A stretch of 64,000 nucleotides of DNA from Anaeramoeba ignava BMAN (GCA_028826165.1 JAPDFW010000092.1:372001-436000); one strand, 5' to 3'; counted from the first letter of the stretch, positions 5,340 through 58,015 are shown. A program made the numbers and translations. Notes: a model not told the origin generated them from the letters alone.

Positions 5340-6335
5340 CAAAATATTTTTAAATAATAAAATATTTAAATCTAAAACAATAAATTATTATTTTAATAAT
5401 AAAATTAAATATTAGATTATATTTTTAAATTAATTTATAAATTAAATATTAAATTAAATCTATTCTTATTTTTATATTTTTATGTTAAATATTTAAATTA
5501 TAAAATATTTAAATCTAAAACATTAAATTATTATTTTAATAATAAAATTAAATATTAAATTATATTTTTAAATTAATTTATAAATTAAATATTAAATTAA
5601 ATCTATTCTCATTTTTATATTTATATGTTGAATAATTTAAATAATAAAATATTTAAATCTAAAACAATAAATTATTATTTTAATAATAAAATTAAATATT
5701 AAATTATATTTTTAAATTAATTTATAAATTAAATATTAAATTAAATATATTTTCATTTTTATATTTTTATGTTAAATATCTAAATAATAAAATAATTAAA
5801 TCTAAAACAATAAATTATTATTTTAATAATAAAATTAAGTATTAAATTATATTTTTAAATTAATTTATAAATTAAATATTAAATTAAAACTATTTTCATT
5901 TTTATATTTATATGTTAAATATTTTTAAATAATAAAATATTTAAATCTAAAACATTAAATTATTATTTTAATAATAAAATTAAATATTAAATTATATTTT
6001 TAAATTAATTTATAAATTAAATATTAAATTAAATCTATTCTTATTTTTTATATTTTATGTTAAATATTTAAATAATGAAATAATTTAAATCTAAAACATT
6101 AAATTATTATTTTAATAATAAAATTAAATATTAAATTATATTTTTAAATTCATTTATAATTTAAATATTAAATTAAATCTATTCTTATTTTTTATATTTA
6201 TATGTTAAATATTTAGATAATAAAATATTTAAATCTAAAACAATAAATTATTATTTTAATAATAAAATTAAATATTAAATTATATTTTTAAATTAATTTA
6301 TAAATTAAATATTAAATTAAATCTGTTCTTATTTT
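5340..6335 (+). repeat. Tandem array family A, ~144-bp monomer (~7 copies)
   Basis: TCTAAAACA at ~5371, 5514, 5658, 5801, 5946, 6090 and 6234. Confidence 0.9.
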
Positions 6336-6337
6336 CT

Positions 6338-8113
6338 TTATTGATTTTGATTATTAAATTTGTTAATTAATAAATCAAATAAATTTGGATTTGTTTCATT
6401 TAATTGAAAATAATCAATTCCAATTTCAATTTCTTTAATAATTTCTTTTGTAATTTGAATTTCATCTTTGATTTGATTTGAATAAATCCAATATTCAAAT
6501 ATTTGAAATGATTTATTACTTAATTCACTATAATCTGTAACTTTATTAGATTTATCTTCAGTTACAGATAAAAACATTCCTCTATATAATTCACTTCTCA
6601 TTATTAATATTAATTTAGGAAATTTGTATTGTTTTTCTTTTCTTTCAATTATAAAATCTTTTTCATTTTCATTTTCATTTAAATAAATTCTTTTCATTGT
6701 TTCTTCAATTTTTTCATTTGAATTTATAATTTCTTTAATTTCAGAATATAATTTTGAATTTATTATTCTGTTTGAATAAATCATTTCAAATATTTGATTT
6801 GATTCTTTAATTGATTTTTTTGAAATAATTTCTTGAAGTTTTTCAATTTGATTTTGATTTTTTAATCTATATTTCAATATTAATTTATGAGCTTTGATTA
6901 TTTCTCCATTTTCGGTTTTAAATGAAATATCACAAAATTCTTTTCTTCCAAATAATTTTATCAAATCTTCTTCAAGATTGGAAAAAGAAGAATAATAATA
7001 AAGAAATGAATTGAAATATCCACAAGAAATATGATAATTAGAAATATTTTCATTAAATCTTAATTCAGGAAGTTCAATTTGAATTGGAATTAATTCATCT
7101 TTTTGTTTATTTCCAGTTCCTAATTGGCCATAATTGTCATATCCAAATACTATTAATTTTGAATTAGAAGTTAAAATCAAAGTATGTCTGTATCCAACAG
7201 AAAAATCAAGAATATAATCATTTTCAAATAAAAATGATTTAATTTCAGTAAATTCATAAGTATCTTCATTTTTACCAAGTCCATTAAATCGCCAATGACC
7301 ACATGAATAAAGTTTTCTTTTTGGATTTTGATCTTCATCTTCATCTTCAATCAACATTATTGAATGAAAAAGTCCACATTTAATATCAATTATTTTACCT
7401 TTTGGAATATTTTGGATTTTGTTTAATTTATAGATTCTTGTTTCTTGTTTTCTTGATTCTCCTAATCCAAGTTGACTAAAGGCATTATCACCACATCCAA
7501 ATAATTCTTGATTTGAATTTAAAAGAAAAACATGTTTTGAACCATTTCCTGAAAATATTCTAGAAACATTTTTCATCATTAAAATTGGTATTTCTGTTCT
7601 TGAAAGTTCTTGAAAATCAAAACCAAATTGACCAACATAATTATCACCAATTCCATAAGCATTTTGATTTGAAGTTAATAAGTAAATTGAATTTCTTCCA
7701 GAAACAATATCTTCAATTATTCTATCATTTGTATCTTCAATTAATGATGAAATATTGATAAATTCTTTTGGATTATTTTGATTAATATCTTTTCCTTTGG
7801 CAAATGTATTTCCTTCTATTGTTAAAATAGCTTCATTTTCATAACCAATAGATACTTTTTGAATATTTTCTTCAATTTGGATTTTTTCAATTTTTTGATT
7901 TGAATCATTTTCATTTAAATATTCTATTGCTTTTCCATTTTCAAAAAGGAAAATTGTTGTAAAATAGTTTGATGAAATTTGTTTAATTTGATTTTCATTT
8001 TCATTTTCATTTTCATTTTCAAATTTAAATTGAATTGGTTTTGTTATTTTTTTTGGTTTATTTTTAATAAGTTTTGGTTCTTTGTTTTTACCAAAAAATA
8101 TAATTTCATTCAT
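6338..8113 (-). CDS. RCC1-repeat + tandem BTB protein
   Basis: RCC1 repeats (YGIGDNYVGQFG, FGCGDNAFSQLGLG, VFGYDNYGQLGTG). BTB motifs FCDISF..AHKLIL and PKLILIMRSELYRGMF. Intronless. Confidence 0.9.
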   Translation of the reverse strand: MNEIIFFGKNKEPKLIKNKPKKITKPIQFKFENENENENENQIKQISSNYFTTIFLFENGKAIEYLNENDSNQKIEKIQIEENIQKVSIGYENEAILTIEGNTFAKGKDINQNNPKEFINISSLIEDTNDRIIEDIVSGRNSIYLLTSNQNAYGIGDNYVGQFGFDFQELSRTEIPILMMKNVSRIFSGNGSKHVFLLNSNQELFGCGDNAFSQLGLGESRKQETRIYKLNKIQNIPKGKIIDIKCGLFHSIMLIEDEDEDQNPKRKLYSCGHWRFNGLGKNEDTYEFTEIKSFLFENDYILDFSVGYRHTLILTSNSKLIVFGYDNYGQLGTGNKQKDELIPIQIELPELRFNENISNYHISCGYFNSFLYYYSSFSNLEEDLIKLFGRKEFCDISFKTENGEIIKAHKLILKYRLKNQNQIEKLQEIISKKSIKESNQIFEMIYSNRIINSKLYSEIKEIINSNEKIEETMKRIYLNENENEKDFIIERKEKQYKFPKLILIMRSELYRGMFLSVTEDKSNKVTDYSELSNKSFQIFEYWIYSNQIKDEIQITKEIIKEIEIGIDYFQLNETNPNLFDLLINKFNNQNQ

Positions 8114-56346: not shown

Positions 56347-56604
56347 AAACTTTTTTTTCACTTTTTTTTCCTAATTCAATTCAATTTTGATTTACTTTTA
56401 ATCAAATTAAATTCTTCAAACTAATAAATAAGAAACAAATCTAATTTCAAACGATTTAATTTTAATTTAAAAACATTATTAAAAAATTTGAAAACAATTA
56501 TAAATAAAAATAAAAATTGAAAATAGAAATTATTAATAATTAAATTTAAATTCTTTATTCCTAGATAAATTATGAATAAAATCAATTAAAATTTATTATT
56601 AAAG

Positions 56605-58015
56605 CTATTCCCATTTTTTATATTTTTATGTTAAATATTTAAATAATAAAATATTTAAATCTAAAACAACAAATTATTATTTTAATAATAAAATTAAATA
56701 TTAAATTAAATCTATCCTAATTTTTATATTTATATGTTAAATATTTAAATAATAAAAATATTTAAATCTAAAACAATAAATTATTATTTTAATAACAAAA
56801 ATTAAATATTAAATTATATTTTTTAAATTAATTTATAAATTAAATATTAAATCAAACCTATTCTCATTTTTATATTTTTATGTTAAATATTTAAATAATA
56901 AAATATTTAAATTTAAAAACATTAAATTAATATTTTAATAATAAAATTAAGTATTAAATTATATTTTTAAATTAATTTATAAATTGAATATTAAATTAAA
57001 TCTATTCTTATTTTTATATTTATATTTTAAATATTTAAATAATAAAATATTTAAATCTAAAAACATTAAATTATTATTTTTAAACATAAAATTAAATATT
57101 AAATTATATTTTTAAATTAATTTATAAATTAAATATTAAATTAAATTTATTCTTATTTTTATATTTATATGTTAAATATTTAAATAATAAAATATTTAAA
57201 TTTAAAACAATAAATTATTATTTTAATAACAAAATTAAATATTAAATTATATTTTTAAATTAATTTATAAATTAAATATTAAATTAAATCTAATTCTTAT
57301 TTTTTATATTTATATGTTTAATATCTAAATAATAAAATATTTAAATTTAAAACAATAAATTATTATTTTAATAATAAAATTAAATATTAAATTATATTTT
57401 TAAATTAATTTATAAATTAAATATTAAATTAAATCTATTTTCATTTTTTATATTTATATGTTAAATATTTAAATAAGAAAATATTTAAATCTAAAACATT
57501 AAATTATTATTTTAAACGTAAAAATTAAATATTAAATTATATTTTTTAAATTAATTTATAAATTAAATATTAAATTAAATTTATTCTTATTTTTTATATT
57601 TATATATTAAATAATTAAATAATAAAATATTTAAATATAAAACATTAAATTATTATTTTAATAATAAAATTAAATATAAAATTATATTTTTGAATTAATT
57701 TATAAATTAAATATTAAATTAAATCTATTCTTATTTTTATATTTATATGTTTAATATCTAAATAATAAAATATTTAAATTTAAAACAATAAATTAATATT
57801 TTAATAATAAAATTAAATATTAAATTATATTTTTAAATTAATTTATAAATTAAATATTAAATTGAATTTATTCTTATTTTCTATATTTATATGTTAAATA
57901 TTTAAATAATAAAATATTTAAATCTAAAACAATAAATTAATATTTTAATAATAAAATTAAATATTAAATTATATTTTTAAATTGATTTATAAATTAAATA
58001 TTAAATTAAACTTAT
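56605..58015 (+). repeat. Tandem array family A, ~144-bp monomer (~10 copies)
   Basis: Same monomer and orientation as 5340-6335. Confidence 0.9.

Follow-up and report, generated by a model that had tools for sequence, protein, structure and literature searches.

In Trypanosoma brucei, the 70-bp repeats upstream of the variant surface glycoprotein (VSG) cassettes supply homology for duplicative gene conversion (PMC8612549, PMC2900300). Here we describe a 144-bp satellite, which we named S144, and the BTB-TLDc gene cassette to which it belongs, starting from a stretch of 64,000 nucleotides of Anaeramoeba ignava BMAN (JAPDFW010000092.1:372001-436000, or C82:372001-436000), referred to below as the window. 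Satellites also occur within transposons, among them Foldback elements, Tetris/DINE-type elements, and Helitron-related elements with internal tandem arrays. As for the genes, Thomas reportedly described in Genome Research in 2006 MATH-BTB families that join a conserved BTB domain to a fast-evolving substrate domain. In grasses and nematodes, the MATH-BTB genes form expanded adaptor families with this combination of domains (PMC4091423). The A. ignava system shares some features with each of these systems and differs from each in others.

S144 is found repeatedly beside BTB genes because it is the upstream arm of a cassette that is present at about 120 genomic places. Only the BTB-TLDc family carries an S144 array within its own repeat unit, and the system amounts to a single BTB-TLDc cassette that has an RCC1-BTB landing junction, rather than to a regulator of BTB genes at large. 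On balance, S144 is probably a component of a composite repeat unit, the array-proximal part of which has recently been spread or homogenised onto older TLDc halves.

The A. ignava BMAN genome comprises 42,843,398 bases in 147 contigs, with 19.35% G+C and 14,837 genes (PMC11550330, Table S1), and its assembly was built from Nanopore and Illumina data; the text and the searchable supplements of the genome paper mention neither the BTB/TLDc expansion nor the satellite (PMC11550330). We compared the window with 20 further genome stretches, designated by locus numbers of the form L0xx. Arrays were detected with Tandem Repeats Finder (TRF), monomer blastn, and wraparound alignment, and phase 1 of the monomer was set at window position 5481. 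Domains were assigned by Pfam and gene frames by tblastn and translations. Genome-wide pattern counts allowed up to three mismatches, with the reversed pattern as a control, and the first-look candidate counts given below for BTB, TLDc, and RCC1-BTB ends are upper bounds.

The original prediction, made from the window alone, held that one 144-bp satellite forms four arrays that always abut intronless BTB genes. The satellite and its four arrays were confirmed by TRF (5349-6335, 49332-50576, 53939-54460, and 56691-58016; 92-96% matches) and by monomer blastn, in which matches of at least 85% fell at the four array sites only and the remainder of the window stayed at the A+T background of about 70%. 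The limits obtained by wraparound alignment are as follows.

5349-6335, plus strand: S144 array A1; 6.9 monomers, canonical left junction, right end at phase 135
49332-50576, minus strand: S144 array A2; 8.7 monomers, no BTB-TLDc gene attached, ends at phases 26 and 119
53950-54460, minus strand: S144 array A3; 3.6 monomers, between the divergent genes X and Y
56598-58010, plus strand: S144 array A4; 250 bp 3' of gene Y, inverted relative to A3

The distances first read between arrays and genes were also borne out: the gap is 3 bp between A1 and the RCC1-BTB stop codon at 6338, 49 bp between A2 and the ATG at 49283, and 56 and 80 bp between A3 and the ATGs at 53894 and 54540, respectively. A BTB gene faces six of the eight array ends in the window; a Ras-family GTPase gene and a small non-BTB open reading frame (ORF) face the remaining two.

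Genome-wide, a 47-nt piece of the monomer has 1,082 matches and its reversed control none, and we estimate the total at about 210 kb of S144 in 165-250 arrays, calibrated on 28 arrays. No exact match to S144 was found in the JGI metagenomes. The tie of the arrays to the BTB repertoire, as originally proposed, was upheld in a narrower form, through a left junction with a single BTB-TLDc gene type. A 45-nt pattern across this junction occurs in 122 copies on more than 60 contigs (reversed control, 0). Arrays in 17 of the 20 loci start at the same monomer phase beside the same flank, and in all 17 sampled loci with the junction this flank leads to a BTB-TLDc gene read away from the array, so that array orientation relative to the gene is fixed. 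Among 100 junctions listed, 46 have, at a distance of 1.3-2.4 kb and on the strand expected, a TLDc match that ranks among the best 150 in the genome; our own estimate of the chance expectation is well under one. Junctions are not enriched near contig starts (6 of the 100 listed lie within 15 kb, compared with about 5% expected). By alignment, the roughly 215 bp beside this "phase-12" junction proved to be about 1.5 degenerate monomers, and the true left boundary, GTGGATTTTGAAAAT, lies about 85-130 bp from the ATG. The left edge of A3 adjoins the same boundary, as canonical modules do, and A3 and gene Y are thus an ordinary member of the module family.

In gene orientation, the repeated unit begins with an RCC1-BTB gene end of 330 bp. 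Next come 3-19 S144 monomers in an array, then roughly 1.5 degenerate ones, and then some 100 bp of promoter and leader; these lead into a gene for a 554-aa protein with BTB, coiled-coil, and TLDc parts, which is followed by a spacer of about 0.5 kb. The 3' part of the unit is made up of a 167-178-bp repeat and a 145-bp repeat, each in two copies, and a second 330-bp RCC1-BTB end, after which the next S144 array may follow. The intact 554-aa product has its BTB domain at residues 40-142 and its TLDc domain at residues 375-528. The 3.5-kb unique part is 89-95% identical across L034, L037, L041, and L047, and modules stand in tandem pairs in L031, L045, and L048.

The RCC1-BTB neighbour belongs to the unit. 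The downstream RCC1-BTB fragment begins at the same base, after the same preceding sequence, in six loci, and a breakpoint fixed in this way indicates that the fragment was inherited with the unit and not made anew at each insertion. In the window, L034, and L037, the array adjoins on its right a complete RCC1-BTB gene at the stop codon; in L031 and L047, it adjoins a fragment from the end of such a gene. The resulting arrangement is one of duplicate, insert, and duplicate, with flank duplicates around the insert in L034, L037, and L047. The adjacency to RCC1-BTB genes is one inherited junction with a 3'-side neighbour. The last 330 bp of the RCC1-BTB genes gave 1,479 first-look candidates, and the 40 scored are 97-98% identical. 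A sharp step of identity at 330 bp was looked for in the RCC1-BTB genes and only a gradient was seen (92-99% over the last 660 bp or so and 75-90% over the rest); as the gradient is also present in g2, an RCC1-BTB gene that has no array, it is not attributable to S144. The 330-bp copies did not group by locus or by type (full gene or fragment). Separately, L038:2131-2347 and L045:3885-4110 hold a second type of S144/RCC1-BTB junction. There, the array's right end (phase 129) runs straight into the beginning of the 330-bp gene-end segment, and this segment reads away from the array. This type suggests a further rearrangement among module parts.

The strongest evidence on the history of the unit comes from the divergence along it. 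The mean pairwise distances among 15 canonical modules are as follows.

Promoter flank: 2.9%
N-terminus and BTB: 2.3%
Middle: 9.3%
TLDc: 16.7%
3' flank: 19.1%

The step points cluster at two distances from the array edge, about 1.0-1.1 kb and about 1.2-1.3 kb, and the synonymous divergence of 0.12 in TLDc compares with 0.04-0.07 in the 5' part. The distance matrices of the 5' block and the TLDc block are uncorrelated (Spearman -0.14 to 0.02), and those of TLDc and the 3' flank correlate at 0.86. A 5' block at 2-3% joined to distal parts at 17-19%, with unrelated histories, points to a cassette that was spread or homogenised by recombination onto older and diverse TLDc halves. Together with the likeness of monomers between arrays described below, we read this history as the outcome of inter-locus exchange that occurred repeatedly, or else of a recent spread, of the cassette next to the array.

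These data bear directly on passive co-duplication, in which the satellite would be a bystander of segmental or tandem duplication of BTB-TLDc loci and would have no role in recombination. We consider this explanation unlikely. It draws on the fixed left junction and RCC1-BTB breakpoints, as expected from one founder, on the tandem module pairs, and on the fact that about half of the gene copies are broken, as expected from birth-and-death turnover. However, it predicts uniform divergence and correlated matrices, whereas a 6- to 7-fold step and no correlation were seen. A further prediction is that the monomers should be either orthologous by position or homogenised locally, and neither was seen. 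Counted from either array edge, the monomers show no positional orthology. Monomer identity is 95.6% within arrays and 95.4% between them, and only 34 of 205 monomers have their nearest relative in their own array, so that concerted evolution within arrays, with monomers closer inside an array than between arrays, was not detected. Simple co-duplication, which the original prediction had itself named as one of the challenges to its idea, accounts for the inherited junctions but not for the divergence step and the uncorrelated matrices. The idea itself, that the arrays act as recombination handles, agrees in part with the two-block structure and with the likeness of monomers across arrays, while recombination as such is what we infer from them. 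Higher-order repeats, hinted at by TRF periods of 287 and 431-433 bp, were considered and set aside, as identity is independent of lag.

The two blocks also differ in selection. The ratio of nonsynonymous to synonymous change (dN/dS) is 0.29 for the BTB region (confidence interval (CI) 0.13-0.65) and 1.27 for TLDc (CI 0.95-1.73). By these ratios, BTB is under purifying selection and TLDc is near or above neutrality, and the intact copies look like working adaptors with a fast-changing partner domain. The BTB-TLDc gene is likely a ubiquitin-ligase adaptor, judging from its domains. Other TLDc proteins are known to bind subunits of the V-ATPase. Among the 14,837 annotated genes, the first-look candidates number 3,711 for BTB, 556 for TLDc, and 1,479 for RCC1-BTB gene ends, and every one of the 150 best BTB matches in the genome scores above 75 bits. 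If the candidate counts hold, this ubiquitin-adaptor expansion would be, to our knowledge, among the largest per megabase. Compared to the MATH-BTB families, the A. ignava genes likewise form a very large lineage-specific BTB family with purifying selection on BTB, a fast partner domain, and many pseudogenes, but the partner domain is TLDc and not MATH. We know of no report that ties MATH-BTB genes to a specific satellite and to the end of a neighbouring gene.

The right ends of the arrays behave differently from the left junction. Over 30 arrays, the right junctions fall into 20 independent classes, of which 14 lie at phases 119-143 of the monomer (P of about 3e-7 by our binomial estimate). 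In the window, the right ends of A1-A4 are at phases 135, 119, 136, and 121, in or beside a CTATTC(T/C)ATTTT motif. The preferred end of the arrays at this motif, as first claimed, was thus found again in a larger sample, and random ends were not seen. The monomer terminates in CTCATTTTT. CATTTTT was found within 40 bp in 6 of 10 unique flanks at phases 119-143, compared with 3.1% of background windows, and several right-end flanks lie just upstream of start codons. Short-homology joining to T-rich tracts would explain both the phase preference and the distances of 50-60 bp to unrelated ATGs.

The genes at these right ends are of many kinds. Besides RCC1-BTB and BTB-BACK genes, they include actin, Hsp70, a prenyltransferase alpha subunit, a Vps4-like ATPase, a GDSL lipase, a helicase, a P-loop protein, and Ras. 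In the 20 other loci, a BTB gene was the neighbour in 10 of 24 cases, mostly through the inherited RCC1-BTB junction or the next tandem module. Thus, the claim that arrays always abut BTB genes describes six of the eight ends in the window and does not generalise; moreover, with 3,711 BTB candidates against 14,837 genes, some adjacency is expected. The claim of intronless neighbours stood for the RCC1-BTB and ANK-BTB genes and not for the three BTB-TLDc genes, which are not intact single ORFs as assembled. The wider proposal of one system that serves TLDc, RCC1, and ANK sensors did not survive, since only BTB-TLDc has an array in its unit and the ANK-BTB junction is unrepeated, being absent from all 20 other loci sampled.

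The neighbours also allow a regulatory role to be weighed, in which nucleosome-sized monomers would form a shared upstream regulatory or boundary element, kept for the control of genes on both sides. The monomer length is near that of the nucleosome core. The arrays occupy entire intergenic spaces, leaving 26-130 bp to the ATGs of Y, X, and ANK-BTB and of several genes in other loci, and their fixed orientation to the BTB-TLDc gene would suit such a role. Still, an array may hold as few as 3 or as many as 19 monomers, many arrays lie against gene 3' ends (RCC1-BTB, actin, helicase, prenyltransferase subunit, and Ras), and about half of the attached genes are broken. We therefore regard cis-regulation as a very doubtful explanation of the arrays.

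A preferred right terminus by many unrelated flanks may also bring to mind a non-autonomous mobile element, with array and cassette moved in trans by a transposon enzyme of the MULE, Crypton, Helitron-like, or Foldback-like kind and with the CTATTCTCATTTTT end of the array as one terminus. Several facts are in keeping with it: the copies are spread over more than 60 contigs, the genome has active DNA transposons (for example, the MULE in the window), and A3 and A4 form inverted arms around gene Y. However, terminal inverted repeats are absent in most copies, and the inverted layout of A3 and A4 is in the minority: the four other array pairs sampled (L031, L035, L045, and L048) are direct. The far terminus is inconsistent, with homology stopping at about five places. 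No target-site duplication was found, there being no empty site for comparison, and the flank duplicates that do exist are 110-700 bp long and homologous to RCC1-BTB. Cruciform or hairpin potential was sought in the monomer and rejected (DNA fold z = +1.16). The unit holds no transposase, its sole ORF being BTB-TLDc, and the MULE in gene Z is a separate insertion. Like satellite-bearing transposons, S144 forms short dispersed arrays of one satellite, each bordered on one side by the same unique sequence, and has a favoured terminus. It differs in that it lacks a transposase or Rep gene and, in most copies, inverted termini, in that short target duplications were not found, and in that its cargo is a host-type gene with its own promoter. 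A mobile element thus appears highly improbable.

Under the reading that we prefer, namely recent spread or homogenisation of an array-proximal cassette, the part that moved would extend from the promoter through the N-terminus to the BTB domain, reaching as far as about 1.0-1.3 kb from the edge of the array. It would have moved by ectopic homologous recombination or by gene conversion, with the long array serving as one anchor and the conserved BTB region as the other, and no element-encoded enzyme would be involved. Where a unit stands behind an RCC1-BTB gene, the duplicated 330-bp gene end may have served as the anchor. Right ends would be joined preferentially at the CTCATTTTT motif of the monomer to CATTTTT tracts, and since several of these flanks lie just upstream of start codons, arrays would come to be placed 50-60 bp from unrelated ATGs. 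In the window, A1 belongs to the broken gene Z, and A3 with the inverted A4 to gene Y, with A2 standing solo by a repeated Ras segment.

Several points weigh against this reading. First, 11 of 16 canonical loci have no flank duplicate within reach, so that the RCC1-BTB route cannot have been the sole route. Second, of 72 arrays enumerated, at least 37, or only about half, carry the canonical junction or gene. Third, the sharply preferred right end by unrelated flanks is mobile-element-like too, and the CATTTTT test was framed after the flanks had been inspected. Fourth, the 20 loci were chosen as the best matches to the first three A1 monomers, which may favour close relatives, and the 3'-flank distances are perhaps inflated by poor alignment of A+T-rich sequence. 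Finally, the layout, the copy numbers, the block structure, the fixed breakpoints, and the end bias were seen directly, but the recombination mechanism, like any benefit to the cell, is something that we infer, and recombination was read from one assembly. Short-read polishing of repeats could blur differences between arrays and could create or hide frameshifts in the A-rich linkers, which would weaken both the monomer-identity result and the pseudogene counts; likewise, some gene breaks could stem from homopolymer errors of the assembly.

The genes and the transposon that surround the arrays in the window are as follows.

1010-2483, minus strand: body of BTB-TLDc gene Z, of the module type; Pfam BTB and TLDc, in-frame stops in the linker
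2484-4809, plus strand: MULE transposon in gene Z, complete, separating the body of Z from its start
4810-5348, minus strand: start of gene Z, with its ATG near 4941, a short promoter, and some 1.5 degenerate monomers; together they form the conserved flank to the left of A1
6338-8113, minus strand: RCC1-BTB gene g1, intact, with its stop codon facing A1 (Pfam)
8207-9988, minus strand: RCC1-BTB gene g2, a tandem duplicate of g1, satellite-free (Pfam)
46389-49283, minus strand: ANK-BTB gene, intact, with its ATG facing the right end of A2 (Pfam)
50667-51245, minus strand: Ras-family GTPase gene, within a segment at 50577-51452 (Pfam)
52462-53894, minus strand: BTB-BACK-TLDc gene X, with a BTB type that differs from that of the module gene (Pfam)
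54540-56346, plus strand: BTB-TLDc gene Y, of the module type (Pfam)
62798-64000, minus strand: BTB-TLDc gene W, continuing beyond the window end (tblastn; BTB match at C82:435897-436220)

A PF00651 match that passed the cut-off was obtained for Z, Y, X, the RCC1-BTB genes, ANK-BTB, and the L031 protein, and the BACK domain was found in gene X only. Gene Z is 93-98% identical to module copies, with homology ending at about 862. The region 4810-5348 is 94% identical to L047, is common to 17 of the 20 loci, and carries one of the 122 junction 45-mers; the A1/g1 junction recurs in L031, L034, L037, and L047. The MULE lies in the 5' coding part of Z, where it breaks the homology with L047. Its ends are perfect terminal inverted repeats of about 29 bp, GCTTGGTTTTGATTCTTGCCAAGTGGCAT and its complement, and its target duplication is about 9-11 bp, around CCATTTAAA. 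Its PF10551 domain (E 9e-6) is just under the curated cut-off, and the element has no match among the 20 other loci.

All three array-adjoining BTB-TLDc genes (Z, X, and Y) are broken as assembled, and 9 of about 19 module genes across the sample are intact. The frame of gene X is disrupted near 53275 and again before 53178, and that of gene Y is shifted in the low-complexity linker at about 55640-55678. Gene Y is 93% identical to L031 over the BTB half. The TLDc parts of X and Y (52456-53036 and 55766-56352) are 88% identical over 595 bp in inverted orientation, and their BTB halves are of different types. As for A2, the 876-bp Ras segment beside it has eight genome copies, 95-100% identical over the full length, several of which adjoin S144. 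In L041 (L041:3238-4119), the adjoining array is opposite in orientation to that in the window. The window array shows its left end (phase 26) and the L041 array its right end (phase 24) at this segment, and the two phases are one palindromic spot of the monomer (AAATATTTAAAT) met in opposite orientations.

The window also contains other tandem repeats.

58-892, no strand assigned: 173-bp satellite array, directly 3' of gene Z; TRF, unrelated to S144 beyond composition
19089-20499: 142-bp satellite array, unrelated to S144 beyond base composition
51453-52433, no strand assigned: 145-bp satellite array, directly 3' of gene X; TRF, unrelated to S144
61410-62654, no strand assigned: 175-bp satellite array, 3' of BTB-TLDc gene W; TRF, unrelated to S144
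11529-13235, 15625-17836, 23325-24510, 29838-31250, and 44642-46370: long microsatellite-like arrays

The 142-, 145-, 173-, and 175-bp satellites were considered as diverged S144 and rejected, as their similarity to it was no higher than that of shuffled controls. In genes Z, X, and W, the stop codon is followed within 30-170 bp by a satellite other than S144 (173, 145, and 175 bp, respectively), and the three genes are flanked by satellite on either side. Microsatellite-like arrays with 6-, 11-, and 12-bp units, 1.2-2.2 kb each, occupy much of the central window, and some of them give rise to spurious long ORFs.

Compared to the VSG cassettes, the S144 modules show several likenesses. First, as in the VSG system with its hundreds of paralogues, many copies carry the same tandem repeat upstream in a fixed orientation, with conserved sequence opposite. 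Second, the S144 module is a mosaic in which the repeat-proximal and distal genealogies differ. There are also differences. The S144 monomer is 144 bp, and its copies are dispersed and not subtelomeric as far as contig ends show. In the S144 module, the repeat-proximal half of the gene is conserved and the distal half is variable. The A. ignava products are cytosolic BTB proteins of a free-living anaerobe and not surface antigens, and an expression site or a donor/acceptor asymmetry is not known for the S144 modules. It is conceivable, and in our judgement quite unlikely as a whole, that S144 arrays anchor a recurrent system which grafts a promoter-plus-BTB front onto a fast-evolving archive of TLDc "sensors" and parks units behind RCC1-BTB genes. 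Such a system would be a cytosolic, free-living counterpart of the VSG cassettes and would keep diversifying cullin-3 adaptors usable, for example, against viruses or for sulfate-reducing symbionts.

For annotation, these results mean that many of these A. ignava genes are mosaic or broken. The satellite provides a handle on the growth of such families, with a discrete front end that was homogenised recently, breakpoints that are fixed, and another gene family as the landing pad. If recombination through the arrays is true, it would constitute a natural and enzyme-free way of moving and re-pairing gene halves and a case of satellite DNA shaping a gene repertoire.

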